NCBI GenBank assembly: GCA_002104945.1
Contig: MCFH01000054.1
Span: 124,001 to 188,000, forward strand
Reading direction: 5' to 3'
Source: Piromyces finnis finn
Lineage: Eukaryota > Fungi > Neocallimastigomycota
DNA: 64,000 nucleotides
Positions 18,176-44,900 of this stretch are shown piece by piece; position 1 is the stretch's first letter; each line of letters opens with the position of its first letter. The position numbers were made by a program, and so were the translations under genes. The notes beneath the pieces were generated by a model. The model worked only from the letters and a program-made list of their open reading frames with translations. It was not told the DNA's origin and did not search any database.

Positions 18176-19990
18176 ATGTCAAATGCTGTTGGCATTGATT
18201 TAGGTACTACTTATTCATGTATTGCTGTTTGTAAAAATGGCCATGTAGAAGTTATTGCTAATGATCAAGGCCATCGTACAACACCTTCTTGTATTCTTTT
18301 TCATGAAGATAGAATTTATATAGGAAAAAATGCTGAATATAAATATAAAAAATATTTAGAAAATTACGTTTATGATGTAAAACGATTAATTGGAAGAGAA
18401 TACTCAGATCCAAATGTTCAGTCTGATTTAAAATATTGGCCTTTTAAAGTTATTGAAAGGCATGGAAAGCCTTATATTCAAGTTGAATATGGAGGTGAAA
18501 CTAATGAATTTATTCCAGAACAAATATCTGCCATGATTCTTTCTAAATTAAAAGATAACGCTCAAGATTATTTGGGTGAAGAAATAAAGGATGTTGTAAT
18601 CACCGTTCCTGCTTATTTTAATGATGCTCAACGTCGAGCGACTAGAGATGCCGGTAGAATTGCTGGTTTAAATGTTTTACAAATTATAAATGAACCAACA
18701 GCTGCTGCTCTTGCCTACGGTCTTAATCGAGCAATACGAGCTGAAAAAAATATTTTAATTTTTGACCTTGGAGGAGGTACATTTGATATTTCTATTCTAA
18801 CTATCAAAAATGGTATATTTAAAGTTAAGGCTACTACGGGCGATACACACCTTGGTGGTGAAGATTTCACCAATTGTCTTGTTGATTATTTTGCTGAAGA
18901 ATTTAAAAGAAAATATGACAAAGATCTTTCCACTAATCCAAGATCATTAAATAGATTAAAAGGAGAGTGTGAACATGCTAAATGTATTCTATCATTTTCT
19001 TCCTATGCTCCTATTGAAATAGAAAAATTATATGAAGATATTAATTTCTTTACCAGCATCACTCGTAGTGGTTTTGAAGAACTAATTTCAAAATTTTATG
19101 ATAGAATTATTGAACTAATTGAGAGAGCATTTAATGATACTCATTTAAACAAATCTGATATTAGTGAGATTGTCATGGTAGGCGGATCGACTAGAATACC
19201 AAAAATTCAAGAATTAGTTTCATCCTATTTTGATGGGAAAAAAATAAGAAAAACTATTAATCCAGATGAAGCAGTAGCACAAGGAGCCGCAATTCAAGCA
19301 GCATGTCTATCTGGTGATCAATCAGAATCAATTAGAGATTATGAACTACAAGATGCTATACCATTATCTCTTGGTGTAGAAAGTGAAAAAGGTTTAATGA
19401 GTATTATCATTAAACGTAATTCAACTTTTCCAATAAAGAAAACTGTTACATGTATAACCTGTGAGGATAACCAAAATTCAGTGTTTATCCGTATATTTCA
19501 AGGTGAACGAAGTTTAGTAAAAGATAATATTTTATTAGGTGAATTTATATTAGAAGGAATTACGGAAGCACCGTGTGGAGAAACATTAATAGAATTAACA
19601 ATAGATATTGATAAAAATGGAATTATTAATGTTTCTGCAGTTGAAGTAGGTACTGGTCTTTCTAGAGAGATTACCATCTCAAATAATAAAGATAAATTAT
19701 ATCAAGAAGAAATTGAACGTTTAATTAATGAAGCTGAAATGTATCGAGAAGAGGATTAGAGATCAAGAGAAAGAATTCAGGCTATGATTAATCTTGATGA
19801 ATATGCTCGTCAACTTCGTAAACGCCTCAATAATGAAGGGAATAATCTAAATATGAATGATAAAGAAAGATTGATTAATGAAATTAGTTCTACAATTGAA
19901 TGGATTATTAATCAACGTAATGCAAGTAAAGAAGAATATGATAATAGAAAAAATGAATTACAAAATCTTTTTAATACACTATTTAATTAA
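18176..19990 (+). CDS. HSP70: Atypical Hsp70 (copy A) interrupted by one in-frame TAG at 19757-19759
   Basis: Motifs [42 protein letters not shown] and GGEDF are present. After REED-TAG the same frame continues (RSRERIQAMINLDEYARQ...LFN*) and aligns with the lid of copy C. Confidence 0.92.
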
Positions 19991-22166: not shown

Positions 22167-25100
22167 ATGAAAAATCTTGGTTTATTATTTATAACTTGTA
22201 AGTTGAATATAATATTAAAATTTTTAATAATTAAAATTTACAGAAATAAGGATTCCTTTTTGTAATATGTAAAAGAGAAAAGAAGAAAAGTTAGAATTGA
22301 ATATTTATATTCATTATTTGTAAATTTATTTATCTTTATTATTTATTAACATTTATTAATACATTATAAAAGAAAAAAAGAAAAAAAACCTTCATAATGT
22401 CTTAACATCAATAATAACATAGCTTTTCTTTTTTTAATTAATATCAATAATATCATACTATAATAATCTAATTAATTTAATATATATTAAATATTTTATT
22501 AAATTGTTTTTTAAAAAAAATAGTTGTTGGTAGTGCCTATGCTGCCGATAATTATTTTAGTAATTCTACTAGAGCAGCAATTTTCGATAAAACAGATTTA
22601 AAAGTTGCAGATCTTACCATTAATTTAAAGGATGATGATTATAAAAATTATTTCCTTACCTATCAATGTATGTATGATACTAATATAAGATATCGTGTAA
22701 AAAATGAAGAATGTTATTCAGCTCCATGGATTAATCTTGATGCTATTTTGGAGGGTGCTGAGAAAAAATCCCTTATAAAAAAGGAAGATATCACTGATGC
22801 TGAAGATTTAGCTATTTATACCAAAAAAAATATTACTATGACTGAATTTGAACATCTTTTCAGTACTTACACTAATTATACTATGGAAGATATTTTTTCC
22901 TCTTCTAACAACTTATACACCATTCCTTTATTTGAAACTGATAATGCTGGCATGACTTTAAAAATTGATGGGTAAGTAGTCATTATGTAAAACATTAATA
23001 TACAATCTGTATACTCTTTATTTTTATTAAAAAAAAAAAAATTAAATTCAAAGAATATCAAGGTTTATAAATAAAACTTTTATTAATGAATAGATATAAA
23101 GAAGGGAAAAAAAATTTTTTTTAAACTAAAAATAATAGCTAATATTTAAATTTTTTTCTAATTTTATAAAATATTTATAATTAAATAAATATACATGATG
23201 GTATAGTGAAGAAGATGAATCTACAAAAATAAAATTATCTATTGGTGGTAAATATACAAAGATTTTTGAAAAATTGGGTTACAACATTAAAGTTAAAAAG
23301 GGTGAATTTTTAGAGAGAAAACAACTTCGTTTACGTACAGAAGCTGTTGATCCATCTTTCCTTAGAGAAAAATTAGCATATGATATTTGTAATGTTGTTG
23401 GTTTACCATCATTATCCGCAAATTATGTTCGTGTATTCTTTAATGAAAAATATATGGGTTTATATGTTTTAAGAGATGCTTTTAAATCTCAATGGATTGA
23501 ATATACTTTTGGTGAAAAATCCACCAAGCATTTATATACTTGTGATAGAAAATATGGTGATAATTCCTATTTCAATTGTATTAATGATGATGAAACTATC
23601 ACCGAAGATAAGGATTGGGAAAATTTCCTTATTCGTTTAGCAGAAACTAAAACAAGAGAAGAACTTGAAGAATTTTTTGACGTTAAAACTTTTATTAAAT
23701 GGCAAGCCCTTAAATACTTATTCGGTTCCTGGGATCATATTACTAATGCTCATAATCAAGTTTTATATATGTACCATGATACCTCTAATGATAGAGATAT
23801 GTGGATTCCATTACTTTATGATTTTGATAGTGAATTTGGTGCTTACAAAGATATTAAAACTAACAGATCTTTTGATGAAGAAGCCCTTGATTCTCCAAAC
23901 CCACTCTACAAACTTCTTAAATTACACGATGATAATGAAGAACTCCTTTCCTACATTGATGAAATCATGAGAAAAGCTTTCAATCCAGGTAACTTATTTG
24001 CACGTATTGATCAATTAAAGGAATTCCTTTCACCTTACGTTAAAGAGGACCGTACTCCAGGTGAAGATGGTCGTTTACCAGGTAGAGTAAAGAGAATTAA
24101 TGTCAAGGTCGAAGATTACTTTGGTTATGATGATTTCATTGGTAACAGTGAATACACTATGATAAAACTTCATAAATATACTAGTGATGAAATTGTTAAT
24201 ACCGATCGTATTATGGGTTTAAAACAATGGATCATTGAAAGATTCCAATTTGCATGTGAATATTACAAATTTGATTGTAGCTATGCTGAAGAATATTTAC
24301 ATGACTATCCATACGAAACTGACGTCATTGAACATGAAGAAAAGAATGGTGGATGTAAAAATTCAGGTTATCCATGTTGTGTAAAAACTAAAACTCTTGT
24401 TTCCAGTGATGCTGTTGGTGACTGGGGTATTGAAAATAATGACTGGTGTCTCTTTGAAACCCCATTTGATAAGAATAGTGAATGTTGGTCAGAAGTTTTG
24501 GGCTATTCTTGTTGTAAAGATAAGAAAACAAAGGTTTCCTATGTTGATGCATCAGGTGAATGGGGTGCTGAACATGGTCAATGGTGTGGTATTACTGACC
24601 TTCAACGTTGTCCAAGTTTTGGTGAATACAAATGTTGTGAAAAATGTAAAGTAGTTTACAGTGATGGTGAAGATTGGGGTGTTGAACATGGAAATTGGTG
24701 TTCAATTCCATACAGCTGTGCAGCTGAAATTAAAGATCCTACCACCACCACCACCACTACTACTACTACTACCACCAGTAAAGTTGAAACTCCAATAGAA
24801 ACTACAATTGATGAAGAAGAAACCACCGATCTTATAGAACCAACTTCAACTATAACCTTTATCGAATTAACTACAGAAAATGTTGAAACCTCAATGGTTG
24901 AAGAGACTACACCAGTAGTGGATTCAACTGAAACCATCATAACAACTGTATTTATTGAAGAAACTACACCAGTAGTGGATTCAACTGAAACCATCATAAC
25001 AACTGTATTTATTGAAGAAACTTCTACTATTACTATTGATATTGAACCTACCACCACCATTGTTCATGAAGAAAGTACTATTGTTTTCCCAGAACCAACT

Positions 25101-25559
25101 ACCACTGTTGATGAACAAGAAACTGAAGCTACCACTATTGTTTCAATACCAACCACTACAGTTGATGGACAAGAAACTGAAGCTACCACTATTGTTTCAA
25201 TACCAACCACTACAGTTGATGGACAAGAAACTGAAGCTACCGAATCTAGTGATGATGACAGTAGTAGTGATGATGAAGATGAAACCATGGATATTTCTGA
25301 TTTAAGAGAAATTACCGAACATGATTCAGTAGAAGAACCCACTTCTTCAATTGTACCAGAACGTACCAGAACAATTACCATTACATCAACATCTATTCGT
25401 CCAATAATTCTTCCTACAAATATTATTAATCCAATTATTTCCATTATTGATGAAATAGAAATTAGTGATGATGAAGAAGTTACAGTATCAGCAACTGTTG
25501 AAGAAGCCGACAGTGACAGTAGTGACAGTGAAAGTGATGAAGGAGAAGAATTTGTTTAA
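22167..25559 (+). CDS. cotH: CotH-family secreted kinase with 3 fungal dockerins (CBM10/NCDD) and a Thr/Glu/Asp-rich tail, 3 exons
   Basis: Exons 22167-22197, 22524-22971 and 23207-25559 join in frame. CotH motifs: LRLRTEAVDPSFLREKLAYD, GSWDH, IPLLYDFDSEFG. Three Cys/Trp dockerins (GYPCC...WGIENNDWC etc.) precede Thr-rich repeats. Confidence 0.92.
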
Positions 25560-26583: not shown

Positions 26584-28140
26584 CTATATTGTTAATCTTT
26601 CGATTTCTTCTTGATATAATCTTTCTCTGTCGTTTGTTATGGTAATCTTTCTAGAAAGACCAGTTCCTATTTCAACTGCAGAAACATTAATAATTCCATT
26701 TTTATCAATATCTATTGTTAATTCTATTAATGTTTCTCCACACGGTGCTTCCGTAATTCCTTCTAATATAAATTCACCTAATAAAAAATTATCTCTTACA
26801 TATATCTCCTCTCCTTCATATATACTGATATATACTGAATTTTGATTATTCTCATTTGTTGTACAAAATATAGTTTTACTAGTTGGAAGACTGGAATTAC
26901 GTTCAATAATAATATTCATATAACCATTGCTATCCTCAATGCCAATGGAAAATGTCGTAACATCTTGTAAATTTATATTTTTAATAGATTCTGATTGATC
27001 ACCTGAAATATTTGCTGATTGAATAGCCGCTCCACATGCAACCGCTTCATCCGGATTAACTGTCTTGTTTAATTTTTTCCCATCAAAATAGGAGGTGACC
27101 AATTGTTGGATTTTTGGAATTCGGGTGGATCCACCAACTAACACAATTTCATCAATATCCGATTTGTCTGAATCTGTATCAGAAAGAACTCGTTCAATGG
27201 GTTCAAGTATCTTTTCAAAATAATCTGAATTTAATTCTTCAAATTGAGCACGTGTTATACCACTGTATAAATCTATACCATCAAATAAATGTTCAATTTC
27301 AACAGAAGCATAGAAAGAAGATGAAAGAATGCATTTTGCTCGTTCACACAATTTCCTTAATCTATTTAATGATCTTGAATTAGTAGAAATATCTCTGTCA
27401 TATTTTCTTTTAAATTCTTCAACAAAATAGTCTACTAGACGATTAGTTAGATCTTCCCCACCAAGACGAGTATCTCCTGCTGTAGCTTTAACCGTAAATG
27501 TACCATTATTAATAGATAAAAGAGAAACATCTGTTGTACCTCCACCAACATCAACAACTAAAATATTTTCTTCACCCTTTATTGTTTTATTAAGACCATA
27601 GGCAAGGGCAGCGGCAGTTGGTTCATTTATAATTTGTAAAACATTTAAACCAGCGATCCTAGAAGCATCCACGGTCGCTCGACGTTGAGCATCATTAAAA
27701 TAAGCAGGAACGGTGATTACAACATCTTTTACTTCTTCGCCTAAATAATCTTGAGCATAATCCTTTAATTTAGAAAGAATCATGGCAGATATTTCTTCTG
27801 GCATAAAATCCTTGATTTCATTTTTATATTCAACTTGAATAAAAGGTTTTCCATTTCTTTCAATAACTTTGAAAGGCCAGTACCTTAAATTAGATTGAAC
27901 TTCTATATCATTAAAATTACGACCTATTAATCGTTTGACATCAAAGACTATGTTTTTAAAATCAATTCCATTTATCTGTTGAGCTTCATCACCAACTAAT
28001 CTTTCAGTAGAGGTAAATGCAACCAAAGAAGGTGTTGTACGATGTCCTTGATAATTAGCAATAACTTCTACATGACCATCTCTATAAATAGCAATACATG
28101 AATAAGTAGTGCCTAAGTCAATACCAATAAATCCCCTCAT
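26584..28140 (-). CDS. HSP70: Atypical Hsp70 (copy B), truncated before the lid; degenerate lid sequence follows the stop
   Basis: Full NBD motifs are present and the ORF ends EEIERLTI*. The same frame past the stop reads KRIISLNNFEDYTYNF...ILT*IE, which resembles the lid of copies C and D. Confidence 0.9.
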   Translation of the reverse strand: MRGFIGIDLGTTYSCIAIYRDGHVEVIANYQGHRTTPSLVAFTSTERLVGDEAQQINGIDFKNIVFDVKRLIGRNFNDIEVQSNLRYWPFKVIERNGKPFIQVEYKNEIKDFMPEEISAMILSKLKDYAQDYLGEEVKDVVITVPAYFNDAQRRATVDASRIAGLNVLQIINEPTAAALAYGLNKTIKGEENILVVDVGGGTTDVSLLSINNGTFTVKATAGDTRLGGEDLTNRLVDYFVEEFKRKYDRDISTNSRSLNRLRKLCERAKCILSSSFYASVEIEHLFDGIDLYSGITRAQFEELNSDYFEKILEPIERVLSDTDSDKSDIDEIVLVGGSTRIPKIQQLVTSYFDGKKLNKTVNPDEAVACGAAIQSANISGDQSESIKNINLQDVTTFSIGIEDSNGYMNIIIERNSSLPTSKTIFCTTNENNQNSVYISIYEGEEIYVRDNFLLGEFILEGITEAPCGETLIELTIDIDKNGIINVSAVEIGTGLSRKITITNDRERLYQEEIERLTI

Positions 28141-29115
28141 TTTTAATTTTTAATTAATATATTAATAAAAATGAAAAATAAAAAAAAAATTTAAAGAAAA
28201 TTTTTCTTTTCATATTAATTTATAAAATATAAATATGTGTCTAATTATCTAATTAATATAATTTTATTAATAAAATGATCAACTATAAATTGATTCGATA
28301 TTTTATATTAAATTTTTTTATAATAATAAATTAGACTTTAAAAAATGGAAATGAAAATGAAAATGATAATCTTCTTTAATATGTAAAATAAACAATTATA
28401 TTTTAGTATAATTCCTGTATCCTGTATAATAAATAAAATGTATTAGAAAATATTATAATAAAATAGAATTATATTTATTAATATTTATTAATATTTTTTT
28501 GTTATTAAATATATATAAAATAATAAAAAATAAAAAGTTCTTTTTTTTCTATATGATTATTAAAACATTGAATTATTTAACTACCTCTCTTTATCTTTCT
28601 CATTTAATATCGTTTTTTTTTATAAACACATAATTATTTACGTATATATTTATTTAAAAGTTTTTTTTAATTTTATTTATTTATAAATTATTGTTTTTTT
28701 TTTCCTTCATTATATGTATACAAACATAGAACAAATTCTGTAAATATTTATTTATATATGTTATCCTTTATATATAATTAAAAAAAATAAAATAAAATAT
28801 TTCATTAAATATTTATCATTAAAAGATTTATTGAATTTTAAATACTTGAAATGGTGGTGTAGTTTACAATATTATTTAAAGAATTTTGAGATATTTTATT
28901 TATAATTTTATTCATTTCATTTATTCAATTTCATTTATTCATTTCATTTATCTATATAACCGAATAAAAAAAAAAAAAGTAGAATATTAGATTAATAAGA
29001 TGAAAAAAGAAGATAATATTTTTTTTAAAAAAAACAAATAAATAGTAATTATGAGAAATAGGAATATATAATGTTTTAATTTAATATATTTTATTATAGA
29101 AGAATAAAAGATATA

Positions 29116-29327
29116 TTATGAAAACAGATTATTAACATGTTCTTGTAATACTTTCTAGTGGTACCTTTTGCTAATTCACTTTCATACTGCACTACTCTAA
29201 ATTTTATGATTATTTGTCCATAATGTCATATTATATATATATACTTAACCTTCTACTGGAATATAGGTGTATTATTATTTTGTTCAATGATAGGATTCAT
29301 CATAATTCCCAAATTACCAACACTTGA
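29116..29327 (-). pseudogene. Degenerate Hsp70 SBD/C-terminal fragment (mirror copy)
   Basis: Reverse complement of 33371-33582. Confidence 0.7.
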
Positions 29328-29609
29328 TAAAAAATAAAATCTTTAAGATTTCTAATAGATTTTGATTGATCATTTGAAAAATTAAAAAAATTCAATCATA
29401 ATATAAGTTATATATATATTATGATATTTTAATAAAAAATATTTTTAAAAAAAAAACACATAAAAGTTGATATACACTTTAAAAAACAATGATAATATAT
29501 ATATATTTTTTTAATTTGTTTTTTTTTTTTATTTTTAAAGTTATAAGATTATTTTTGAAGTAATAAATTTATATATGTATTGATTTTTATATATTTATAT
29601 ATTATTTAA

Positions 29610-30662
29610 TTAGTTAGCCAAGCGCTTTTCGGATTTTAAGTATTCAACAATTTCAGGATTGCTAGAAACAGTTTTGTAAACCTTTATAAGATTTGGAGTA
29701 GTCTCATTGCTGAAAAATCCTTTTAATGGTGGGAAATCAATATAACTTTCAACAAGGCAATAGGCAACAATATCAACATAAGTAAGTTTATCATTCATGT
29801 AATGGCCATTAGACCCATTATTGGCAAGAATTTCTTCTTGATATTTAATACCGTTCTTAATGGCATCGTTGTTTAATACAGTCTTTTCAACAGGTTCACC
29901 TAACCCTCTCTATTATTAATATTAATATTTAGTTTATTTATAGATATAAATATAAATATTAGGTATAGGTATAGATGTTAGGTATTAGATATAAGTATAG
30001 ATACAGGTATAGGTATAGGTATAGATATTAGGTATAGATATAGATGTTAGGTAGAGGTATAAAAAATATTTTTTAAATACTACGTTTCCATTTTTAAAAT
30101 ATGAATACAAAAGAATAACTAATAGTAATAGAAATGGATGGTTACCTCAGCCATAAAAACAGCAGACATAATTTTATCAGCGACATCATAGAGTCCAGTA
30201 AAGTAAGAATCAAGAAGTGCATTCTTACATGGACATTTAGTATTTAAATCTATAATTATTTATTAATATTATTTTTTAATATTAATATTATTATTATTAT
30301 TATTTAGATAATATACAATTATTAAAATATTTAAATATAAATTAATTTTTTGTATTAAATATACTTATGCAAAAGGCATAAGTAATTAATAATATATAAT
30401 AGTAATAATATATACCAAAAGTGCTGGCGATATATCTAATAATGGCACTAGTTTCAACTAAACGAAGTTCTTCTCCATTAGCTTTATGTTCGATTAACAT
30501 TGGAACTTGCTTATATAAAAGACCTTCAGTAGAAAACTTCTCTTTAGCCCAGTCATTAACTAATTTATTTTCCCAGTTAGCTTTAGCAGCAGCTAAAACT
30601 AAACGAACAAATTCACCTCTACCTTTAATTGGGAAATAGTAAATTTCAAATTTGGAATCCAT
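29610..30662 (-). CDS. GST: Glutathione S-transferase (Tyr-type), 3 exons
   Basis: Exons 30662-30416, 30249-30146 and 29909-29610. Motifs YYFPIKGRGEFVRL, QVPML, ETSAIIRY and LTYVDI; mirror of 32035-33087. Confidence 0.92.
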
Positions 30663-31096
30663 TGTTTGTTTTTATTTAATAATTATTTAATAATTTATTG
30701 TTTTCTTTAATTTTTTGTTTTTGATTAAAGTGTATATGTATTAAAGAAAAATAAAAAAAAAAAAAAAAAAGAAAATATAAATGTCTTTTTATATTAAAAA
30801 TTTTAATTTCCAAAAATTTATTAATTAGTAATTGATATTAATTTATAAACTTTAATTATTAATATTTAATACTATTATTTAATATAATATTAATAAAAAT
30901 TATGATGATTTCGAAAATAAATTCCACCATGCCTTCGATCTAATTCTTAACTCAACCGATCAATTTTAAATGATCCATTAAATATGGAAATGCATAGATA
31001 ATGCTTTAGTTATTCATAATTTATAAGAAAATATTCGTTTATGCCGGTTTTAGTAATATATATATATATAAATAATATATTAATAAAATAATATAT

Positions 31097-31584
31097 ATAT
31101 TATTTTTAAAAATTAATAAAATATTACAATACTTGAAATGGTGATGTAGTTTGCAATATCTTTTAAAGTATTTTGAGATATTTTATTTACAATTATAATT
31201 TTATTCATTTATTTTTTTTTTTCATTTATTTATATATAAAAGAATATTTTAATAAATAGATAAAAATTAATATAAAAAAGAGAGAATAATGAAACAACGA
31301 TAACTAATTATTTTTTTTTTTTAAAAAAAATGTAATTATGAGAAATTGGTATATTATATTTTTAATCTAAATATTATAAGAATAGATTATTAGCGTTTTC
31401 TTGTAATATTTTAAAAATAGATTATTGAATTAAAAATTATTAGATACTTTTATATATTATCTTTTAAATATTTATAATTCCAATGTTGTTTGTGATAGTA
31501 TAATGATTATAATTATAATTATTCATTATACTATAATAATTTAATAATACAATATATTTAATAATATAAAAATATTAGTATTAA
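31097..31584. other. Non-palindromic spacer of the inverted repeat, containing the last 12 codons of an Hsp70-D-like gene (31374-31409, minus strand)
   Basis: The minus strand reads ILQENANNLFL*, as at the end of copy D. The rest matches 40335-40820 in rearranged order. Confidence 0.85.
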
Positions 31585-32034
31585 ATATATTATTTTATTA
31601 ATATATTATTTATATATATATATATTTATATATATATATATTACTAAAACCGGCATAAACGAATATTTTCTTATAAATTATGAATAACTAAAGCATTATC
31701 TATGCATTTCCATATTTAATGGATCATTTAAAATTGATCGGTTGAGTTAAGAATTAGATCGAAGGCATGGTGGAATTTATTTTCGAAATCATCATAATTT
31801 TTATTAATATTATATTAAATAATAGTATTAAATATTAATAATTAAAGTTTATAAATTAATATCAATTACTAATTAATAAATTTTTGGAAATTAAAATTTT
31901 TAATATAAAAAGACATTTATATTTTCTTTTTTTTTTTTTTTTTTATTTTTCTTTAATACATATACACTTTAATCAAAAACAAAAAATTAAAGAAAACAAT
32001 AAATTATTAAATAATTATTAAATAAAAACAAACA

Positions 32035-33087
32035 ATGGATTCCAAATTTGAAATTTACTATTTCCCAATTAAAGGTAGAGGTGAATTTGTTCGTTTAGTT
32101 TTAGCTGCTGCTAAAGCTAACTGGGAAAATAAATTAGTTAATGACTGGGCTAAAGAGAAGTTTTCTACTGAAGGTCTTTTATATAAGCAAGTTCCAATGT
32201 TAATCGAACATAAAGCTAATGGAGAAGAACTTCGTTTAGTTGAAACTAGTGCCATTATTAGATATATCGCCAGCACTTTTGGTATATATTATTACTATTA
32301 TATATTATTAATTACTTATGCCTTTTGCATAAGTATATTTAATACAAAAAATTAATTTATATTTAAATATTTTAATAATTGTATATTATCTAAATAATAA
32401 TAATAATAATATTAATATTAAAAAATAATATTAATAAATAATTATAGATTTAAATACTAAATGTCCATGTAAGAATGCACTTCTTGATTCTTACTTTACT
32501 GGACTCTATGATGTCGCTGATAAAATTATGTCTGCTGTTTTTATGGCTGAGGTAACCATCCATTTCTATTACTATTAGTTATTCTTTTGTATTCATATTT
32601 TAAAAATGGAAACGTAGTATTTAAAAAATATTTTTTATACCTCTACCTAACATCTATATCTATACCTAATATCTATACCTATACCTATACCTGTATCTAT
32701 ACTTATATCTAATACCTAACATCTATACCTATACCTAATATTTATATTTATATCTATAAATAAACTAAATATTAATATTAATAATAGAGAGGGTTAGGTG
32801 AACCTGTTGAAAAGACTGTATTAAACAACGATGCCATTAAGAACGGTATTAAATATCAAGAAGAAATTCTTGCCAATAATGGGTCTAATGGCCATTACAT
32901 GAATGATAAACTTACTTATGTTGATATTGTTGCCTATTGCCTTGTTGAAAGTTATATTGATTTCCCACCATTAAAAGGATTTTTCAGCAATGAGACTACT
33001 CCAAATCTTATAAAGGTTTACAAAACTGTTTCTAGCAATCCTGAAATTGTTGAATACTTAAAATCCGAAAAGCGCTTGGCTAACTAA
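32035..33087 (+). CDS. GST: Glutathione S-transferase (Tyr-type), 3 exons
   Basis: Exons 32035-32281, 32448-32551 and 32788-33087 give an open ~217-aa GST with N-terminal thioredoxin-like and C-terminal helical domains. Confidence 0.92.
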
Positions 33088-33370
33088 TTAAATAATATAT
33101 AAATATATAAAAATCAATACATATATAAATTTATTACTTCAAAAATAATCTTATAACTTTAAAAATAAAAAAAAAAAAACAAATTAAAAAAATATATATA
33201 TATTATCATTGTTTTTTAAAGTGTATATCAACTTTTATGTGTTTTTTTTTTAAAAATATTTTTTATTAAAATATCATAATATATATATAACTTATATTAT
33301 GATTGAATTTTTTTAATTTTTCAAATGATCAATCAAAATCTATTAGAAATCTTAAAGATTTTATTTTTTA

Positions 33371-33582
33371 TCAAGTGTTGGTAATTTGGGAATTATGATG
33401 AATCCTATCATTGAACAAAATAATAATACACCTATATTCCAGTAGAAGGTTAAGTATATATATATAATATGACATTATGGACAAATAATCATAAAATTTA
33501 GAGTAGTGCAGTATGAAAGTGAATTAGCAAAAGGTACCACTAGAAAGTATTACAAGAACATGTTAATAATCTGTTTTCATAA
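33371..33582 (+). pseudogene. Degenerate Hsp70 SBD fragment fused to an Hsp70 C-terminal end
   Basis: GGACAAATAATCATAAAATTTAGAGTAGTGCAGTATGAAAGTGAATTAGCAAAAGGT (GQIIIKFRVVQYESELAKG) aligns with copy C GQTVIRFKVLQGERELVKD. The fragment ends KVLQEHVNNLFS*, like copy D KILQENANNLFL*. Stops and frameshifts are present. Confidence 0.75.
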
Positions 33583-34557
33583 TATATCTTTTATTCTTCT
33601 ATAATAAAATATATTAAATTAAAACATTATATATTCCTATTTCTCATAATTACTATTTATTTGTTTTTTTTAAAAAAAATATTATCTTCTTTTTTCATCT
33701 TATTAATCTAATATTCTACTTTTTTTTTTTTTATTCGGTTATATAGATAAATGAAATGAATAAATGAAATTGAATAAATGAAATGAATAAAATTATAAAT
33801 AAAATATCTCAAAATTCTTTAAATAATATTGTAAACTACACCACCATTTCAAGTATTTAAAATTCAATAAATCTTTTAATGATAAATATTTAATGAAATA
33901 TTTTATTTTATTTTTTTTAATTATATATAAAGGATAACATATATAAATAAATATTTACAGAATTTGTTCTATGTTTGTATACATATAATGAAGGAAAAAA
34001 AAAACAATAATTTATAAATAAATAAAATTAAAAAAAACTTTTAAATAAATATATACGTAAATAATTATGTGTTTATAAAAAAAAACGATATTAAATGAGA
34101 AAGATAAAGAGAGGTAGTTAAATAATTCAATGTTTTAATAATCATATAGAAAAAAAAGAACTTTTTATTTTTTATTATTTTATATATATTTAATAACAAA
34201 AAAATATTAATAAATATTAATAAATATAATTCTATTTTATTATAATATTTTCTAATACATTTTATTTATTATACAGGATACAGGAATTATACTAAAATAT
34301 AATTGTTTATTTTACATATTAAAGAAGATTATCATTTTCATTTTCATTTCCATTTTTTAAAGTCTAATTTATTATTATAAAAAAATTTAATATAAAATAT
34401 CGAATCAATTTATAGTTGATCATTTTATTAATAAAATTATATTAATTAGATAATTAGACACATATTTATATTTTATAAATTAATATGAAAAGAAAAATTT
34501 TCTTTAAATTTTTTTTTTATTTTTCATTTTTATTAATATATTAATTAAAAATTAAAA

Positions 34558-36372
34558 ATGAGTGGATTTATTGGTATTGACTTAGGTACTACTTATTCAT
34601 GTATTGCTATTTATAGAGATGGTCATGTAGAAGTTATTGCTAATTATCAAGGACATCGTACAACACCTTCTTTGGTTGCATTTACCTCTACTGAAAGATT
34701 AGTTGGTGATGAAGCTCAACAGATAAATGGAATTGATTTTAAAAACATAGTCTTTGATGTTAAACGATTAATAGGTCGTAATTTTAATGATATAGAAGTT
34801 CAATCTAATTTAAGGTACTGGCCTTTCAAAGTTATTGAAAGAAATGGAAAACCTTTTATTCAAGTTGAATATAAAAATGAAATCAAGGATTTTATGCCAG
34901 AAGAAATATCTGCCATGATTCTTTCTAAATTAAAGGATTATGCTCAAGATTATTTAGGCGAAGAAGTAAAAGATGTTGTAATCACCGTTCCTGCTTATTT
35001 TAATGATGCTCAACGTCGAGCGACCGTGGATGCTTCTAGGATCGCTGGTTTAAATGTTTTACAAATTATAAATGAACCAACTGCCGCTGCCCTTGCCTAT
35101 GGTCTTAATAAAACAATAAAGGGTGAAGAAAATATTTTAGTTGTTGATGTTGGTGGAGGTACAACAGATGTTTCTCTTTTATCTATTAATAATGGTACAT
35201 TTACGGTTAAAGCTACAGCAGGAGATACTCGTCTTGGTGGGGAAGATCTAACTAATCGTCTAGTAGACTATTTTGTTGAAGAATTTAAAAGAAAATATGA
35301 CAGAGATATTTCTACTAATTCAAGATCATTAAATAGATTAAGGAAATTGTGTGAACGAGCAAAATGCATTCTTTCATCTTCTTTCTATGCTTCTGTTGAA
35401 ATTGAACATTTATTTGATGGTATAGATTTATACAGTGGTATAACACGTGCTCAATTTGAAGAATTAAATTCAGATTATTTTGAAAAGATACTTGAACCCA
35501 TTGAACGAGTTCTTTCTGATACCGATTTAGACAAATCGGATATTGATGAAATTGTGTTAGTTGGTGGATCCACCCGAATTCCAAAAATCCAACAATTGGT
35601 CACCTCCTATTTTGATGGGAAAAAATTAAACAAGACAGTTAATCCGGATGAAGCGGTTGCATGTGGAGCGGCTATTCAATCAGCAAATATTTCAGGTGAT
35701 CAATCAGAATCTATTAAAAATATAAATTTACAAGATGTTATTTCTCTTTCATTAGGTGTTGATAATAGAGGAACAACAGTAGATACTATCATTAAACGTA
35801 ATACCCATATTCCAGCAGAAGGTAAGGATATTCGTATAACATGTCGTGATGGACAAACAGTCATAAGATTTAAAGTTTTACAAGGTGAGCGTGAATTAGT
35901 AAAAGATAATACTGTCCTAGGTGAAGTTGTATTAGAAGGTATTACATCAGCTCCTCGTGGTGAAACAAAAGTTGAATTAACTTATAAAGTAGATATCAAT
36001 GGTATTATTCATGTGTCTGCTGTTGAGTTAGGCACTGGTCTTTCTAGAGAGATTACCATATCAAATAATGAATTATCTCAAGAAGAGATTGAACATTTAA
36101 TTAATGAAGCTGAAATGTATCGAGAAGAAGACAGGAAAGCCAAAGAAAGAATTCAATCTATGAATAAACTTGATGATTATGCTCGTCAACTTCTTAAACG
36201 TCTTAATAATGAAAAGGATAGATACAAAATTAAAATAGAGGATGAAAATAAATTAAGAAATATTATTACTGCCACAATTGAATGGATTTTCGATCATCAT
36301 GATGCAAGTAAAGAAGAATATGATGAAAAAAGAAATGAATTATTAAATCTTGCTTCTTCTCTTTTTAAATAA
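34558..36372 (+). CDS. HSP70: Atypical Hsp70 (copy C), the only uninterrupted copy; no EEVD tail
   Basis: 604-aa ORF with all NBD motifs, an SBD-beta and a lid; it ends LASSLFK. Confidence 0.95.
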   Translation: MSGFIGIDLGTTYSCIAIYRDGHVEVIANYQGHRTTPSLVAFTSTERLVGDEAQQINGIDFKNIVFDVKRLIGRNFNDIEVQSNLRYWPFKVIERNGKPFIQVEYKNEIKDFMPEEISAMILSKLKDYAQDYLGEEVKDVVITVPAYFNDAQRRATVDASRIAGLNVLQIINEPTAAALAYGLNKTIKGEENILVVDVGGGTTDVSLLSINNGTFTVKATAGDTRLGGEDLTNRLVDYFVEEFKRKYDRDISTNSRSLNRLRKLCERAKCILSSSFYASVEIEHLFDGIDLYSGITRAQFEELNSDYFEKILEPIERVLSDTDLDKSDIDEIVLVGGSTRIPKIQQLVTSYFDGKKLNKTVNPDEAVACGAAIQSANISGDQSESIKNINLQDVISLSLGVDNRGTTVDTIIKRNTHIPAEGKDIRITCRDGQTVIRFKVLQGERELVKDNTVLGEVVLEGITSAPRGETKVELTYKVDINGIIHVSAVELGTGLSREITISNNELSQEEIEHLINEAEMYREEDRKAKERIQSMNKLDDYARQLLKRLNNEKDRYKIKIEDENKLRNIITATIEWIFDHHDASKEEYDEKRNELLNLASSLFK

Positions 36373-36532
36373 TATCAATACTTTAGTGTATCATATACAT
36401 CATATATATAAATGGTTTTCCCATTTTTTAAACTATTATATAAAATAACTATCAGACATTCTTTTAATATGTTGTTTTTGTAAAATTATAATATTTAGTC
36501 TATTTTATTATTTTTTCTTTTATTTATCATAC

Positions 36533-36535
36533 TAT

Positions 36536-36567
<32 letters not shown>

Positions 36568-36574
36568 TTACTAC

Positions 36575-36643
<69 letters not shown>

Positions 36644-36685
36644 TGATGATGATGATGATGATAATAATAATGATGATAATAATAT
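36533..36685. repeat. Compound (ACT)n(AAT)n(GAT)n microsatellite at the duplication junction
   Basis: Direct reading of 36533-36685. Confidence 0.9.
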
Positions 36686-36713
36686 TACTAATAATATTAA
36701 TAAATAATTATAG

Positions 36714-37353
36714 ACTTAAATACTAAATGTCCATGTAAGAATGTACTTCTTGATTCTTACTTTACTGGACTCTATGATGTCGCTGATAAAATTATGTCTG
36801 CTGTTTTTATGGCTGAGGTAACCATCCATTTCTATTACTATTAGTTATTCTTTTGTATTCATATTTTAAAAATGGAAACGTAGTATTTAAAAAATATTTT
36901 TTATACCTCTACCTAACATCTATATCTATACCTAATATCTATACCTATACCTATACCTGTATCTATACTTATATCTAATACCTAACATCTATATATATAC
37001 CTAATATTTATATTTATATCTATAAATAAACTAAATATTAATATTAATAATAGAGAGGGTTAGGTGAACCTGTTGAAAAGACTGTATTAAACAACGATGC
37101 CATTAAGAACGGTATTAAATATCAAGAAGAAATTCTTACCAATAATGGGTCTAATGGCCATTACATGAATGATAAACTTACTTATGTTGATATTATTGCC
37201 TATTGCCTTGTTGAAAGTTATATTGATTTCCCACCATTAAAAGGATTTTTCAGCAATGAGACTACTCCAAATCTTATAAAGGTTTACAAAACTGTTTCTA
37301 GCAATCCTGAAATTGTTGAATACTTAAAATCCGAAAAGCGCTTGGCTAACTAA
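36714..37353 (+). pseudogene. GST: 5'-truncated GST (exons 2 and 3 only)
   Basis: Exons 36714-36817 and 37054-37353 match the other copies with a few substitutions. Exon 1 is absent; the microsatellite lies upstream. Confidence 0.85.
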
Positions 37354-37633
37354 TTAAATAATATATAAATATATAAAAATCAATACATATATAAATTTAT
37401 TACTTCAAAAATAATCTTATAACTTTAAAAATAAAAAAAAAAAACAAATTAAAAATATATATATATTATCATTGTTTTTTAAAGTGTATATCAACTTTTA
37501 TGTGTTTTTTTTTTAAAAATATTTTTTATTAAAATATCATAATATATATATAACTTATATTATGATTGAATTTTTTTAATTTTTCAAATGATCAATCAAA
37601 ATCTATTAGAAATCTTAAAGATTTTATTTTTTA

Positions 37634-37845
37634 TCAAGTGTTGGTAATTTGGGAATTATGATGAATCCTATCATTGAACAAAATAATAATACACCTATAT
37701 TCCAGTAGAAGGTTAAGTATATATATATAATATGACATTATGGACAAATAATCATAAAATTTAGAGTAGTGCAGTATGAAAGTGAATTAGCAAAAGGTAA
37801 CACTAGAAAGTATTACAAGAACATGTTAATAATCTGTTTTCATAA
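37634..37845 (+). pseudogene. Third copy of the degenerate Hsp70 SBD/C-terminal fragment
   Basis: Near-identical to 33371-33582. Confidence 0.7.
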
Positions 37846-38846
37846 TATATCTTTTATTCTTCTATAATGAAATATATTAAATTAAAACATTATATATTCC
37901 TATTTCTCATAATTACTATTTATTTGTTTTTTTTTAAAAAAAATATTATCTTCTTTTTTCATCTTATTAATCTAATATTCTACTTTTTTTTTTTTATTCG
38001 GTTATATAGATAAATGAAATGAATAAATGAAATTGAATAAATGAAATGAATAAATGAAATTGAATAAATGAAATGAATAAAATTATAAATAAAATATCTC
38101 AAAATTCTTTAAATAATATTGTAAACTACACCACCATTTCAAGTATTTAAAATTCAATAAATCTTTTAATGATAAATATTTAATGAAATATTTTATTTTA
38201 TTTTTTTTAATTATATATAAAGGATAACATATATAAATAAATATTTACAGAATTTGTTCTATGTTTGTATACATATAATGAAGGAGAAAGAAACAATAAT
38301 TGATAAATAAATAAAATTAAAAAAAAACTTTTAAATAAATATATACGTAAATAATTATGTGTTTATAAAAAAAAACGATATTAAGTGAGAAAGATAAAGA
38401 GAGGTAGTTAAATAATTCAATGTTTTAATAATCATATAGAAAAAAAAGAACTTTTTATTTTTTATTATTTTATATATATTTAATAACAAAAAAATATTAA
38501 TAAATATTAATAAATATAATTCTATTTTATTATAATATTTTCTAATACATTTTATTTATTATACAGGATACAGGAATTATACTAAAATATAATTGTTTAT
38601 TTTACATATTAAAGAAGATTATCATTTTCATTTTCATTTCCATTTTTTAAAGTCTAATTTATTATTATAAAAAAATTTAATATAAAATATCGAATCAATT
38701 TATAGTTGATCATTTTATTAATAAAATTATATTAATTAGATAATTAGACACATATTTATATTTTATAAATTAATATGAAAAGAAAAATTCTCTTTAAATT
38801 TTTTTTTATTTTTCATTTTTATTAATAAATTAATAAAAAATTAAAA

Positions 38847-40370
38847 ATGAGTGGATTTATTGGTATTGACTTAGGTACTACTTATTCATGTATTGCTATT
38901 TATAGAGATGGTCATGTAGAAGTTATTGCTAATTATCAAGGACATCGTACAACACCTTCTTGTGTTCAAATTAATGGTGATTAAATTTTAATTGGAGAAG
39001 CTGCTATCCAAATAAATAAAAGAAATCCGCAAAATACAATTTTTGATGTAAAACGATTAATGGATCGTAATTTTAATAATACAGAAGTTCAATCTAATTT
39101 AAAACATTGGCCTTTCAAAGTTATTGAAAGAAATGGAAAACCTTTTATTCAAGTTGAATATGAAGGTGAAACTAAGGAATTTATCCCAGAACAAATATCT
39201 GCCATGATTCTTTCTAAATTAAAAGATTATGCTCAAGATTATTTAGGCGAAGAAGTAAAAGATGTTGTAATCACCGTTCCTACTTATTTTAATGATGCTC
39301 AACGTCGAGCGACCGTGGATGCTTCTAGGATCGCTGGTTTAAATGTTTTACAAATTATAAATGAACCCATTGAACGAGTTTTTTCATATACCGATTTAGA
39401 CGAATTGGATATTGATAAAATTATGTTAGTTGGTGAACCCACCCGAATTCCAAAAATCCAACAATTGGTCACCTCCTATTTTGATGGGAAAAAATTAAAC
39501 AAGACAGTTAATCCGGATGAAGCGGTTGCATGTGGAGCAATTCTTCAACAAGCTACTCTTTCTAGTGATCAATCAGAATCTATTAAAAATATAAATTTAC
39601 AAGATGTTACGACATTTTCCATTGGCATTGAGGATAGCAATGGTTATATGAATATTATTATTGAACGTAATTCCAGTCTTCAAATTAGTAGAACTCTATT
39701 TTGTACAACAAATGAGAATAATCAAAATTCAGTATATATCAGTATATATGAAGGAGAAGAAAGGTATGTAAGAGATAATTTTTTATTAGGTGAATTTATA
39801 TTAGAAGGAATTACGGAAGCACCGTGTGGAGAAACATTAATAGAATTAACAATAGATATTGATAAAAATGGAATTATTAATGTTTCTGCAGTTGAAGAAG
39901 GTACTGGTCTATCTAGAAAGCTTACCATCAAAGAAGAATGTAAAGAAAGGGATAAAATATTACAAGAATCTATTTTTTCTTATTTTGATGAAAAAAAATT
40001 AAAGAGAACTATTAATCCAGATGAAACAGTTGCATATAAAGCAACGCATCAAACAGCGAATCAGTCAAGTGATATAATTACTAAACATAATGCACCTATT
40101 TCAGAAGAAAAAGAAAAAAAAGATATGGATTCAAGTAAAATAATTGAAGAAAGTAAAGAATTTTTATATGATCTTCAATTTTATGCTTTTAACCTTCTTT
40201 ATCGTATTAAAGAAACTGATATAAATGATGAAACTAAAACAAATACATTATCTATTCTTATTGATTCTGTTCTTACGTGGATTGGAAGTAATAAAGTTAA
40301 TATTACTAAAGAAGAGTGTGAAGAAAGAAAAAAGATATTACAAGAAAACGCTAATAATCTATTTTTGTAA
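38847..40370 (+). pseudogene. HSP70: Hsp70 copy D: pseudogene with early TAA, 420-bp NBD deletion and fused duplicated segments
   Basis: ATG at 38847 and in-frame TAA at 38982-38984. IINEP joins directly to IERV. SYFDxKKL..T.NPDE.VA and KEEC.ER.KILQE each occur twice. Confidence 0.88.
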
Positions 40371-41030
40371 TATTTAGATTAAAAAATATTATATACCTAT
40401 TTTTCATAATTACTTTTTTTTAAAAAAAAAAAAAAAAAAATAATTAGCTATCGTTGTTTCATTATTCTCTCTTTTTTATATTAATTTTTATCTATTTATT
40501 ATAATATTCTTTTATATATAAATAAATGAAATAAATAAATAAATGAATAAAATTATAATTATAAATAAAATATCTCAAAATACTTTAAAAGATATTGCAA
40601 ACTACATCACCATTTCAAGTATTGTAATATTTTATTAATTTTTAAAAATAGATTATTGAATTAAAAATTATTAGATACTTTTATATATTATCTTTTAAAT
40701 ATTTATTGTTCCAATGTTGTTTGTGATAGTTTAATGATTATATTTATAATTATTCATTATACCCTAATACTTTAATAATACAATATATTTAATAATATAA
40801 AAATATCAGCATTAAATATATTCTTTTATTAAAGCCATCATAAGTCATAAAATAATAAACTGGGAAAAAGAGTGTCGAGCCTTAGATCTAATTCTTAACT
40901 CAACCGATCAATTTTAAATGATCCATAAAATATGGAGATGCATAGATAATGTTTTAGTTATTCATAATTTATAAGAAAATATTCGTTTATGCAAGTTTTA
41001 GTAATACTTATATATATTTATAAATAAATA
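40335..41030. repeat. Rearranged copy of the inverted-repeat spacer and inner-arm sequence
   Basis: 40335-40650 is approximately the reverse complement of 31101-31410; 40640-40820 matches 31409-31590 directly; 40885-41030 matches about 30935-31075 directly. Confidence 0.85.
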
Positions 41031-41929
41031 ACATATTAGCAACTTTTAATAATTCAACTTTTCTCTATTTCCTGCTTTCAATAAAGTTTATAAAAAGCTA
41101 TAATAAAGTGATTACTATTTCTAAACTAATTTTTTTTAATCATTGCCATTTTTTATTTCTTCTTTTTAATTCTTCTACAAATTTATTAAAAAAAATAAAA
41201 AATAAAAAAGAGGATATATAAATAAAAATTATTCACATTTTAATTAAAATTCTATTTTTATAAACAATTAGATTTTTTATTTATTTATTTAATTATTTAT
41301 TTTATTATTTATATATAATTTTGGATAAATAGATAAATAGTTGTTATTAATAATAATTTAATATACTTTTTGATAGATATATGTTTATATATTTATAAAT
41401 AATGTTTCAATAAAAGAAACATTTTTATGCTAATGTTTTATATAAAAGATATTTGTGATAAATGTTAATAGATATTTTTTATATAATTTATATATAGTTT
41501 GAATATTTGTGGTATTATAATTATTTCATTATATTTTTTTTATAAAATATTATAACTACGTAGATATTTATTTCTTATTTATTGATAATAAGAAATTTAA
41601 ATTTTTTTTTTTCATTTTTTTTTACATACAAATAATAATATTAATAATAAAAAGAATATTATTATTATCATTTTACTTAATGTTATAAATATATTATGTT
41701 ATCCGATATTATAAAGTTTTTTTTTGTTTTTTTTTTTTTCATTGCTTAGCTTGTTTTATATTTTATATTTTTTATATGATAATATAAAAATATATAAAAT
41801 AAATATTATTAATCAATTAATAATATTTTCCCTTTGACAAGTTACAAATAACAAAGGTTTTTTATATATTGATATATATATTATTAATTGTTTTATTTTT
41901 TTCATAACTTGATAAACTTCCTTTTATGC

Positions 41930-44900
41930 TTAAAATTTGTTTTCAATTAATGCACATCTGTAGTAGAAATCGTTGACATATTCACATCTAAATCCCTCTT
42001 CACAGCATGGAGAGGCATCAGGATAATTCAAACCACCACATGGATAATATCTTTTTGTTATAGATTCACAAACTTCTGGAGTAGGAATGATTGTGGAATT
42101 AGCAGTTGTAGTTGTAGTAATAGTTTTAACTTTAGTAGTAGTGGTGGTAGTAGTGGTAGTAGTGGTAGTGGTAGTTTTTGTTTTTGTAGTTTTTGTTTTT
42201 GTAGTTTTTGTTTTTGTAGTTTTTGTTTTTGTAGTAGTAGTTGTTGTAGTTGGTTTTTCAGTAGTAGTAGTTGTTGTAGTTGGTTTTTCAGTAGTAGTAG
42301 TTGTTGTAGTTGGTTTTTCAGTAGTAGTAGTTGTTGTAGTTGGTTTTTCAGTAGTAGTAGTTGTTGTAGTTGGTTTTTCAGTAGTAGTAGTTGTTGTAGT
42401 TGGTTTTTCAGTAGTGGTAGTAGTAGTAGTTGGTTTTTCAGTTGTAGTAGTTGTATTTGAAACTTCTTCTTTGTATGGAACGCACATGTAGTAGAAAATA
42501 TTTTGATATTCACATCTGTATCCCTTTTCACAACAAGGAGAGGCATTTGGATAATTAAGTCCACCACATGCATAATAACCTTTAGTATAGCTAGTACATA
42601 CTTCTGGAGTTGGTATAACTGTAGAAGTTGTTGTTGTTGTCTTTGTTTTAGTAGTAGTGGTAGTAGTAGTAGTCTTTGGTTTTTCAGTAGTGGTGGTAGT
42701 AGTTGTGGTCTTTGGTTTTTCAGTAGTAGTGGTAGTAGTTGTGGTCTTTGGTTTTTCAGTAGTGGTAGTAGTGGTAGTAGTAGTCTTTGGTTTTTCAGTA
42801 GTGGTGGTAGTGGTAGTAGTTGTGGTCTTTGGTTTTTCAGTAGTAGTGGTAGTAGTTGTGGTCTTTGGTTTTTCAGTAGTGGTAGTAGTGGTAGTTGTAG
42901 TCTTTGATTTTTCAGTAGTAGTGGTAGTAGTGGTGGTCTTTGGTTTTTCAGTAGTGGTGGTAGTGGTAGTAGTAGTCTTTGGTTTTTCAGTAGTGGTGGT
43001 AGTGGTAGTAGTAGTCTTTGGTTTTTCAGTAGTGGTGGTAGTGGTAGTAGTAGTCTTTGGTTTTTCAGTAGTGGTGGTAGTGGTAGTAGTAGTCTTTGGT
43101 TTTTCAGTAGTGGTGGTAGTGGTAGTAGTAGTCTTTGGTTCTTCAGTAGTAGTGGTGGTAGTAGTGGTAGTCTTTGGTTCTTCAGTAGTAGTGGTAGTAG
43201 TGGTGGTATTTACTTTACAAGAATATGGAATTAAACACCAATCATCTTCAAAACCCCATAGATAATTATCCTCGAATGTAATTGTACAGGTATTCTTACA
43301 ACATTTATAATTTTCAAATCTTGGACAACGTTGAAGATCAGTGATACCACACCATTCGTTATTTTCTATACCCCATTCTTTTCCATCTTTTGTTGGAATA
43401 ATGGTAGTTTTTTCATCTTGACAACATTGATAACCTTCTTTAAGAGACCAACATTCCTCTTTTATGTAACACCATTGACCATATTCTATACCCCAATTAC
43501 CTGATCTATCTGACATTATAACTGTAGTGGTGAAAACACAACATGGATAACCAGAATTGTTACAGCCACCATTCTTTTCATCATATTCAATAATATCAGT
43601 CTTATAATTTTTGTAATCCAAGTATTCAGCAGCATAACTACAATCTAAATTATAGTTTTTACAAGCAAATTGGAATCTATTTAAAATCCAATACTTTAAA
43701 CCCATAATTTCTTCTGTATAATAATGGATACTACTTGTATACTTGTTAAGTCTAATGGTTGTGTATTCGGTATTATGATCGAAATCATCATAACTGAAAT
43801 AATCTTCAATTTTTATGTTCACTCTCTTTATTCTACCTGGTAAATTATCATCCTTTCCTGGAGTACGATCTTCTTTAATGTATGGAGAAATGAATTTCTT
43901 TAATTCATCAATACGAGGGAAGAGAATTTTTGGATTGAAAATCTTTCTCATATATTCATCAATGTAAGATATAAGTTCTTTATTATTATCATCTAATTTA
44001 AGAATAGTATAAAATGGATGTTTTTTATCTACTAGGTTTTCAATATATTTTGAAAATGATTTACGAGGTTCAAGACCTTTAAAAGCACCAAATTCACTAT
44101 CAAAATCATACAGTAATGGAATCCATGTATCTTTTCCTGAGACAGGATCATGGAATCTATATAAAGCTTGATTATGAGCATTAGTATTATGATCCCAAGA
44201 GCCAAATAAATATTTAAGGGCTTGCCATTTTATATAAGTTTTAACATCAAAGAATTCTTCGAGATCTTCTCTTGTCTTGACGGTTTCTAAACGTTTAAGA
44301 AAATCATTCCAGTCTTGATCAACTACAATTTCTTCATCATCATTTACACAGTTAAAGAAACGGTTTATTTCAGTATTATCACAAGTATACAAGTGTTTAG
44401 TAGATTTTTCACCAAAAGTATATTCAATCCATTGAGATTTGTAAGCATCTCTTAAAGAATATAAACCCATAAATTCATCATTAAGGTAAAAACGAGCAAA
44501 ATTAGATGAAAGTGATGGTAATTCTAAAATATTACAAATATCATAAGCTAATTTTTCTCTAAGGAAAGATGGATCAACAGCTTCTGAACGTAAACGTAAT
44601 TGTTTTCTATCGAAAAGAAGACCCTTTTTTATTTTAATATTATATCCTAATTTCTCAAAATTCTTGGTATATTTACCTCCTACAGCAAATTTAATTTTTG
44701 GTAAATCATTAACATCCCTAAAATATATAGATATAATAAATGAAAAATATTATAATTATTATATATTATTATTTCATTATAAATATTAATTTTTTATAGT
44801 AACTATTATGATATCCCAATTTTTACAAATATTATAAACTTTTTGTATCTATTTATTATAATAGATACAATTATATCTAATATTTTTCTTATCGTCTTTT

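Follow-up and report, generated by a model that had tools for sequence, protein, structure and literature searches.

Why should a long and almost perfect inverted repeat end inside two genes, at the linker between the ATPase half and the client-binding half of an Hsp70? The question is raised by a locus of the anaerobic gut fungus Piromyces finnis finn (GenBank assembly GCA_002104945.1, contig MCFH01000054.1, positions 124,001 to 188,000 of the forward strand). This whole stretch of 64,000 nucleotides is called the window here, and positions given without a prefix are counted from its first letter. Two units, each made of a GST gene and an Hsp70 gene, stand head to head in the window around a short spacer; they are nearly identical from the spacer outward through the nucleotide-binding domain (NBD) of Hsp70, and part company at the start of its substrate-binding domain (SBD). 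Judged from the sequence, this arrangement is probably the outcome of arm-to-arm gene conversion between inverted GST-Hsp70 units that already existed, stopped by a homology cliff at the SBD, in a gene family that is mosaic and partly decayed.

A repeat search of the window returned two inverted pairs, 26930-29539/33159-35768 (99% identity) and 29506-31074/31623-33191 (100%), and the only split between them is a 1-bp indel. Alignment of the reverse complement of arm 1 with arm 2 (MAFFT) gave exactly five substitutions over the core, 26958-31074 against 31623-35740. All five, at 34563, 34587, 34761, 35523 and 35528 in arm-2 coordinates, fall in the Hsp70 NBD, and the sole core indel (1 bp at 29531/33167) is a homopolymer run of A12 against A13. 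Once a register shift in the (TA)n tract is allowed, the arms reach 31102/31579, and a global alignment of the full arms has 4138 matches, 7 mismatches and 17 gap columns. Arm 1 (26958-31102, minus strand) contains the NBD of Hsp70-A, 1.47 kb of intergenic DNA, GST-A and some 440 bp from upstream of GST; arm 2 (31579-35740, plus strand) carries the upstream region of GST-B, GST-B itself, the intergenic stretch and the NBD of Hsp70-B. In each arm the first 394 codons of the Hsp70 gene, that is, the NBD, are included, and the exons of GST-A and GST-B are identical. Between the arms lies a unique, AT-rich spacer of 476 bp (31103-31578) with (TA)n tracts at both bounds. At a divergence of 0.12%, or an identity of about 99.9%, the 4.1-kb match is far beyond chance; identity to the next copy, the tandem unit C, is 95.9%, and to other copies at most 89%.

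The identity of the arms stops after ...CAAGATGTTA at 26958/35740, immediately behind the codons for LQDV. Past this point Hsp70-A and Hsp70-B keep register, but DNA identity drops at once to about 60-70%, with values of about 40-75% in single windows. Their NBDs are 99.5% identical as proteins and their SBD-beta regions 45.5%; the lid is not comparable, as Hsp70-A is without one. The original prediction, made from the letters of the sequence alone, had described near-identical 4.1-kb inverted arms at these coordinates, with at least five NBD substitutions, a 1-bp indel, a change in TA-repeat length and identical GSTs, whose identity stops after the LQDV codons, so that a single promoter-plus-NBD unit is joined to two different SBDs. 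In nearly all its details, with coordinates, counts and junction correct, this description is borne out by the repeat search and the alignment, and both joins are in frame.

Several tests locate a recombination junction at the same place. Sliding windows revealed sharp identity steps at 35680-35740 in several pairs of paralogs, and the 45 bp at 35696-35740 (plus strand), which encode ..GDQSESIKNINLQDV, are identical in Hsp70-A, Hsp70-B and the Hsp70 copy of unit C (Hsp70-C). The maximum chi-square method placed a break point at 35695-35741 in Hsp70-A, which is B-like and then C-like, and at 35733-35741 in Hsp70-B, which is A-like and then resembles the paralog C213_1. A third gene, C183_17k, turns from C213_2-like to C213_1-like at 35694-35700 in arm-2 coordinates (permutation p<=0.001 for all three). 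The maximum-likelihood trees conflict accordingly. In the NBD tree, Hsp70-A, Hsp70-B and Hsp70-C group with C213_1, and C183_17k and C213_2 group with a further paralog of the window, Hsp70-D; in the SBD-beta tree, Hsp70-A and Hsp70-C group with Hsp70-D, while Hsp70-B, C213_1 and C183_17k fall together. Approximately unbiased (AU) tests rejected a grouping of A with B forced on the SBD data (p=4e-46), of C183_17k with C213_2 on the SBD data (p=5e-5) and of C183_17k with C213_1 and B on the NBD data (p=3e-47). The locus thus combines the marks of a converted inverted pair, namely an arm identity far above that to the next paralog, an abrupt step at 35740 and conflicting genealogies on its two sides. 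C183_17k is a second chimera of independent origin, and its junction falls inside these same 47 bp. The original prediction had also ascribed the exchange of the SBD to a recombination or template-switch event. A recombination junction is what the chi-square test and the tree conflict support; the idea that formation of the repeat and exchange of the SBD were one event is not supported as stated, as the SBD types are found elsewhere at a divergence of about 4%, against 0.12% between the arms.

The relatives of the two SBDs were sought in the whole genome, which contains at least 17 Hsp70-like loci and, in addition, fragments. One of the fragments is a degenerate solo SBD-lid piece at C90, about 811,880-812,430, with several stops and a frameshift; it lies tail to tail with an intact C90 Hsp70, and its homology begins directly after the LQDV codons. 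Two Hsp70 clusters, C183:10001-26000 and C213:156001-172000, are collinear segmental duplicates (87-95% identity) with three or four Hsp70 genes each. The nearest genomic relative of either SBD type in the DNA search is about 4% away. For the A-type SBD-beta of Hsp70-A (26639-26957, minus strand) it is the SBD-beta of the pseudogene Hsp70-C (39610-39928), with 96% DNA and 91% protein identity; in the protein comparison, Hsp70-A and Hsp70-C share 80.8% over the 208 alignable NBD residues and 90.9% over SBD-beta, the lid again not being comparable. The X-type 3' module of Hsp70-B (35741-36540, plus strand) comprises SBD-beta, lid and about 170 bp of 3' flank, up to a (TAC)n microsatellite. This stretch of SBD, lid and 3' untranslated region (3'UTR), about 0.8-1 kb long, is 96% identical to C183:16353-17169 and 94% to C213:159825-160621. 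All three carriers share its 3' end, which lies at the (TAC)n microsatellite some 170-190 bp beyond the stop codon. Hsp70-B and C213_1 have protein identities of 86.5% in the NBD, 94.5% in SBD-beta and 92% in the lid; for Hsp70-B and C183_17k the corresponding values are 75%, 94.5% and 92%. C183_17k has a C213_2-like promoter and NBD, but a C213_1/B-like SBD-lid-3'UTR, and since C213_2 is its counterpart by position in the two duplicated segments, it is the clear recipient of the B-type cassette.

Relative ages can be read from the same comparisons. The two SBD modules themselves separated long ago. The arms are 0.12% apart and the nearest relative of each SBD about 4%; therefore, the arms must have been homogenised well after either SBD parted from its relative. 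Unit C is about 4% from the arms, and Hsp70-A and Hsp70-C are about 4% apart along their whole shared length. At all five sites that differ between the arms, the Hsp70-B allele is that of Hsp70-C and of most paralogs, and the Hsp70-A base is unique and derived. Import of these five alleles into Hsp70-A from another paralog was considered and dismissed, as none of the 10 aligned paralogs carries them.

Under the preferred reading, the arms would be kept alike by ectopic, intrachromosomal gene conversion. Conversion tracts would run outward from the spacer and halt at the start of the SBD, where the partners differ too much; the outer ends of the repeat would fall at the domain linker because tracts cannot pass this diverged start. 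The difference between the SBDs would itself be the product of an older ectopic replacement. In the favoured order of events, the locus would first have held units with the A-type SBD, which was kept in Hsp70-A and in the tandem copy C, and a cassette of the C213_1/C183_17k type, about 0.8-1 kb long, would then have replaced the SBD-lid-3'UTR of Hsp70-B. The transfer may have proceeded by gap repair, with the conserved end of the NBD and the 3' microsatellite as anchors, and gap repair with such anchors would put the junctions at the linker without any special signal. Replacement of the 3' module of B is more likely than replacement of the SBD of A by a C-like one, because A and C are about 4% apart throughout, copy C must have matched the SBD of B at its origin and at least one transfer of the cassette is demonstrable. 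The events may also have run in the opposite order.

Several points weigh against this account. Either Hsp70-A or Hsp70-B may be the recombinant, and conversion is deduced from a pattern in one assembly rather than observed. A homology cliff does not explain why the solo SBD fragment of C90 also starts at the linker. Further, the five substitutions all lie in the outer 1.18 kb of the arm, for which uniform placement gives a probability of about (1183/4117)^5 = 0.002. Neither this outer clustering nor the restriction of all changes to Hsp70-A is predicted by simple uniform homogenisation; a second, later inner tract or some other cause is needed. The confinement of the substitutions points to an even later conversion tract across the inner 2.9 kb, and the clustering remains partly unexplained.

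The present state of the Hsp70 copies also bears on how the locus came about. Hsp70-B (34558-36372, plus strand; 604 aa), with NBD, SBD-beta and lid, is the only intact full-length Hsp70 among the copies at the locus. It matches the PF00012 profile over positions 2-591 of 599 (E=7e-208), and among solved structures human HSPA1A, HSPA2 and HSPA8 come closest to it (E about 1e-200). Hsp70-A (26584-28140, minus strand; 518 aa) consists of the NBD and the A-type SBD-beta and matches the profile over positions 2-510 only (E=3e-194), without the lid. Its stop codon comes just past SBD-beta, and downstream of it there are only degenerate lid remnants. An intron that might rescue the lid was rejected, since the vicinity of the stop lacks a GT donor and the remnants themselves contain a deletion and additional stops. 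Unit C (36661-39367, plus strand) is a tandem partial copy of arm 2, which begins inside GST intron 1 at a (TAA)n microsatellite, without GST exon 1, and ends in the 5' part of the Hsp70 NBD. The compound (TAC)n(TAA)n(TGA)n microsatellite at 36540-36660 is at once the 3' end of the SBD cassette and the start junction of unit C; simple repeats are found at every rearrangement junction seen at the locus, including (TA)n at the centre of the palindrome. The pseudogene Hsp70-C (38847-40370, plus strand) has an in-frame stop at codon 46 and an NBD deletion of about 130 codons, and only two partial stretches of it match PF00012. Its 3' part is scrambled, with an A-type SBD-beta followed by a stray NBD-tail fragment and an unrelated lid. 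Hsp70-D (18176-19984, plus strand) has one in-frame TAG. A 117-bp tract of SBD-beta is identical in Hsp70-D (19530-19646) and Hsp70-C (39781-39897), with 116 bp of it in Hsp70-A (26671-26786); because the flanking DNA is only 60-85% alike, this tract is a short gene-conversion patch.

With only Hsp70-B intact, Hsp70-A lid-less and Hsp70-C a pseudogene, the locus looks like a product of birth-and-death and concerted evolution, and not like a designed system with two SBDs. The ratio of nonsynonymous to synonymous substitution rates (dN/dS) of the NBD in this subfamily is 0.3-0.5, and about 1 for the pair C183_20k/C213_3. Such values are very high for Hsp70 and point to relaxed or diversifying evolution of a lineage-specific expansion; together with the truncated Hsp70-A and the broken Hsp70-C, they point to a fast-evolving family under weak constraint. 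No EEVD tail was found on Hsp70-B, which ends in ...ASSLFK, and its linker reads NINLQDV in place of the canonical hydrophobic DLLLLDV type. Paralogs of canonical length (654 aa) occur elsewhere in the genome, at 56% identity. On these three grounds, the Hsp70 genes of the locus are judged to belong to a divergent lineage-specific subfamily, not to the housekeeping SSA type.

Conversion between old arms has to be set against other ways in which the same structure could have arisen. The very low divergence of the arms, 0.12%, is also what a single recent inverted duplication would leave, in which arm 1 was made de novo by fold-back or template switching at (TA)n and its far end landed in an older Hsp70, giving the chimera in one step. 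Self-complementary (TA)n tracts lie exactly at both inner arm ends, and all five differences are on Hsp70-A, as would be expected of a young, less constrained copy. However, at its outer end the arm joins a homologous gene with register and reading frame intact, which would require homologous recombination with an older paralog anyway, and a one-step duplication thereby becomes a special case of conversion. Nor do the remaining distances favour it: the SBD of Hsp70-A is about 4% from that of unit C, as C is from the arms, which fits an old locus of three units, and the non-palindromic 476-bp spacer has an older copy of 94% identity elsewhere. A template switch is not needed for the locus, and an origin of this kind is considered unlikely. 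An artefact of assembly or polishing, be it a fold-back chimeric read, a haplotype mis-join or over-polished repeats, is less likely still. It would draw on the fact that there is a single assembly, made from PacBio data only with Falcon/Quiver (PMC5622200), that a 1-bp indel in an A12/A13 run is a typical consensus error and that differences are seen only close to the unique outer flank. Nor did an independent contig emerge from exact-protein look-ups and metagenome scans: the look-ups gave no match for Hsp70-A or Hsp70-B, the shared 25-mer spanning the linker had no match in metagenome contigs, and the A-type SBD had only relatives of 41-46% in these contigs. A fold-back chimera, however, is a spacer-less perfect palindrome whose identical arms run to the end of the read, and here a unique spacer of 476 bp separates arms that run into different, in-frame, paralog-related flanks. 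The five substitutions between the arms, as unique derived alleles, likewise speak against an artefact, and the 8.8-kb structure is within reach of a single long read.

A different kind of alternative accepts recombination but gives the linker itself a part in it. The linker between NBD and SBD would then be a genuine hot spot of recombination, or a boundary that selection favours, and the cassette would have moved repeatedly, possibly through 3'-biased, cDNA-mediated conversion, to yield combinations of NBD and SBD that share regulation and differ in clients. Two independent chimeras have junctions within 47 bp, the 5' and 3' ends of the cassette are the same in three genes, the homology of the solo SBD-lid fragment of C90 starts just after LQDV, and a transcript might end at about the place where the cassette does, some 170-190 bp beyond the stop codon. 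The junctions of the two chimeras are robust and that of C90 is suggestive, all three within about 50 bp. On the other hand, there are only two or three junctions, with a coincidence p of about 0.003-0.05, and short conversion patches are scattered along the gene. The DNA of the linker is no better conserved than the adjoining NBD, and an Hsp70-A without lid, a broken Hsp70-C and dN/dS values of 0.3-1 suggest that constraint is weak and that the system is not a tuned one. Homology begins at query residues 307 and 351 in other Hsp70 fragments of the genome; a hot spot common to all break points was rejected on this evidence, and therefore only a local excess at the linker is claimed. A true hot spot or selected boundary of this kind appears improbable. 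The broader proposition is doubtful, if somewhat less so: that SBD, lid and 3'UTR form a discrete cassette, copied repeatedly onto paralogs or duplicated alone, always with its 5' junction in some 50 bp of the linker, whether through a hot spot or through selection, and that the inverted repeat is one product of a system shuffling NBDs and SBDs.

The arms also hold the two GST genes. GST-A (29610-30662, minus strand) has about three exons, and those of GST-B (32035-33087, plus strand) lie at about 32035-32283, 32452-32556 and 32806-33087, with bounds set by eye from reading frames and GT/AG sites. Searched singly against Pfam, exon 1 of GST-B matched GST_N (E=4e-8) and the last exon GST_C_3 (E=2e-9); thus, both the thioredoxin-like GST_N domain and the alpha-helical GST_C domain of a GST were found, exon by exon. 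No open reading frame (ORF), Rfam family or tRNA was found in the spacer (31103-31578) or in the 1.47-kb DNA between GST and Hsp70, and heat-shock elements of the nGAAnnTTCnnGAAn type are absent from the whole window. Downstream of unit C, a rearranged copy of the spacer and of the inner arm end lies at 40331-41036 (92-94% identity). The left portion of the spacer is inverted in it with respect to the right one, and a 155-bp piece of GST upstream sequence within it has the orientation of arm 1. The possibility that the spacer or the arms are a transposon or a miniature inverted-repeat transposable element (MITE) was discarded, as the genome search gave one rearranged spacer copy of 94% identity, 9 kb away, and otherwise weak AT-rich matches. 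Recombination between the arms that flips the spacer, as the original prediction had also suggested, is plausible on general grounds.

The window has a G+C content of about 20%, and its genes are spliced. Near the repeat, at 23274-25559 (plus strand), an ORF of 761 aa combines a domain of the CotH kinase-like type with three CBM10 (fungal dockerin) modules and ends in a long tail of Thr/Glu-rich repeats. Such a gene with CotH and CBM10 dockerins is typical of cellulosome-associated proteins of anaerobic fungi and a hallmark of the anaerobic gut fungi. On the other side, at 42074-43255, there is a G+C-richer block (0.34) with about 24 copies of a repeat whose period is roughly 36-39 nt, probably a repetitive coding region.

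Large genomic palindromes, such as the ampliconic ones of sex chromosomes, have kilobase-scale arms that are more than 99.9% identical around a unique spacer and undergo intrachromosomal conversion. The Piromyces arms are likewise more than 99.9% identical around a unique spacer, which could in principle invert; they differ in that they are only 4.1 kb long and in that one arm end has apparently been cut back by ectopic replacement of a 3' module. A closer parallel in gene content is offered by the palindromic hsp70 pairs of Drosophila, Hsp70Aa/Hsp70Ab and Hsp70Ba/Bb, which evolve in concert via ectopic gene conversion (PMC3924832, reviewing Bettencourt and Feder, 2002). In both cases, genes of the cytosolic Hsp70 type lie as mirror images on either side of a short spacer, the paralogs resemble each other much more closely than expected from their age and the promoter regions are homogenised too. 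Unlike the Drosophila pairs, the Piromyces block takes in the entire GST gene upstream and the intergenic DNA but no more of Hsp70 than its NBD half, and it ends inside the coding region, at a domain linker; its partners carry SBDs that look unrelated (45% identity), and one partner is truncated. Among fungi, the Hsp70s SSB1 and SSB2 show concerted evolution with sharp conversion-tract boundaries that match the coding region (PMC3879978). There, as in Piromyces, fungal Hsp70 paralogs are homogenised by gene conversion, and the boundaries of the tracts are sharp and reproducible. However, the SSB boundaries are the ends of the ORF, with flanks that diverge, whereas the Piromyces tract includes the 5' flank and a neighbouring gene and has an intragenic 3' boundary. 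The Piromyces family is also a lineage-specific, fast-evolving expansion (dN/dS 0.3-0.5) and not a conserved pair. The locus is a tidy example of a well-known process and no new kind of system.

Its value is that of a clean, datable case in which a protein-domain boundary sets the limit of concerted evolution. Identity between the two copies is maintained over a promoter, the adjacent GST gene and the ATPase half of Hsp70, but not over the client-binding halves. An expansion of Hsp70 genes in the Neocallimastigomycota has been reported (PMC8778642). Taken with the second chimera and the shared cassette, the locus shows that this expansion evolves by mosaic exchange and decay, and not by simple duplication and divergence. 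Mosaic exchange of this kind matters for gene trees, copy counts and annotation in the AT-rich genomes of gut fungi.

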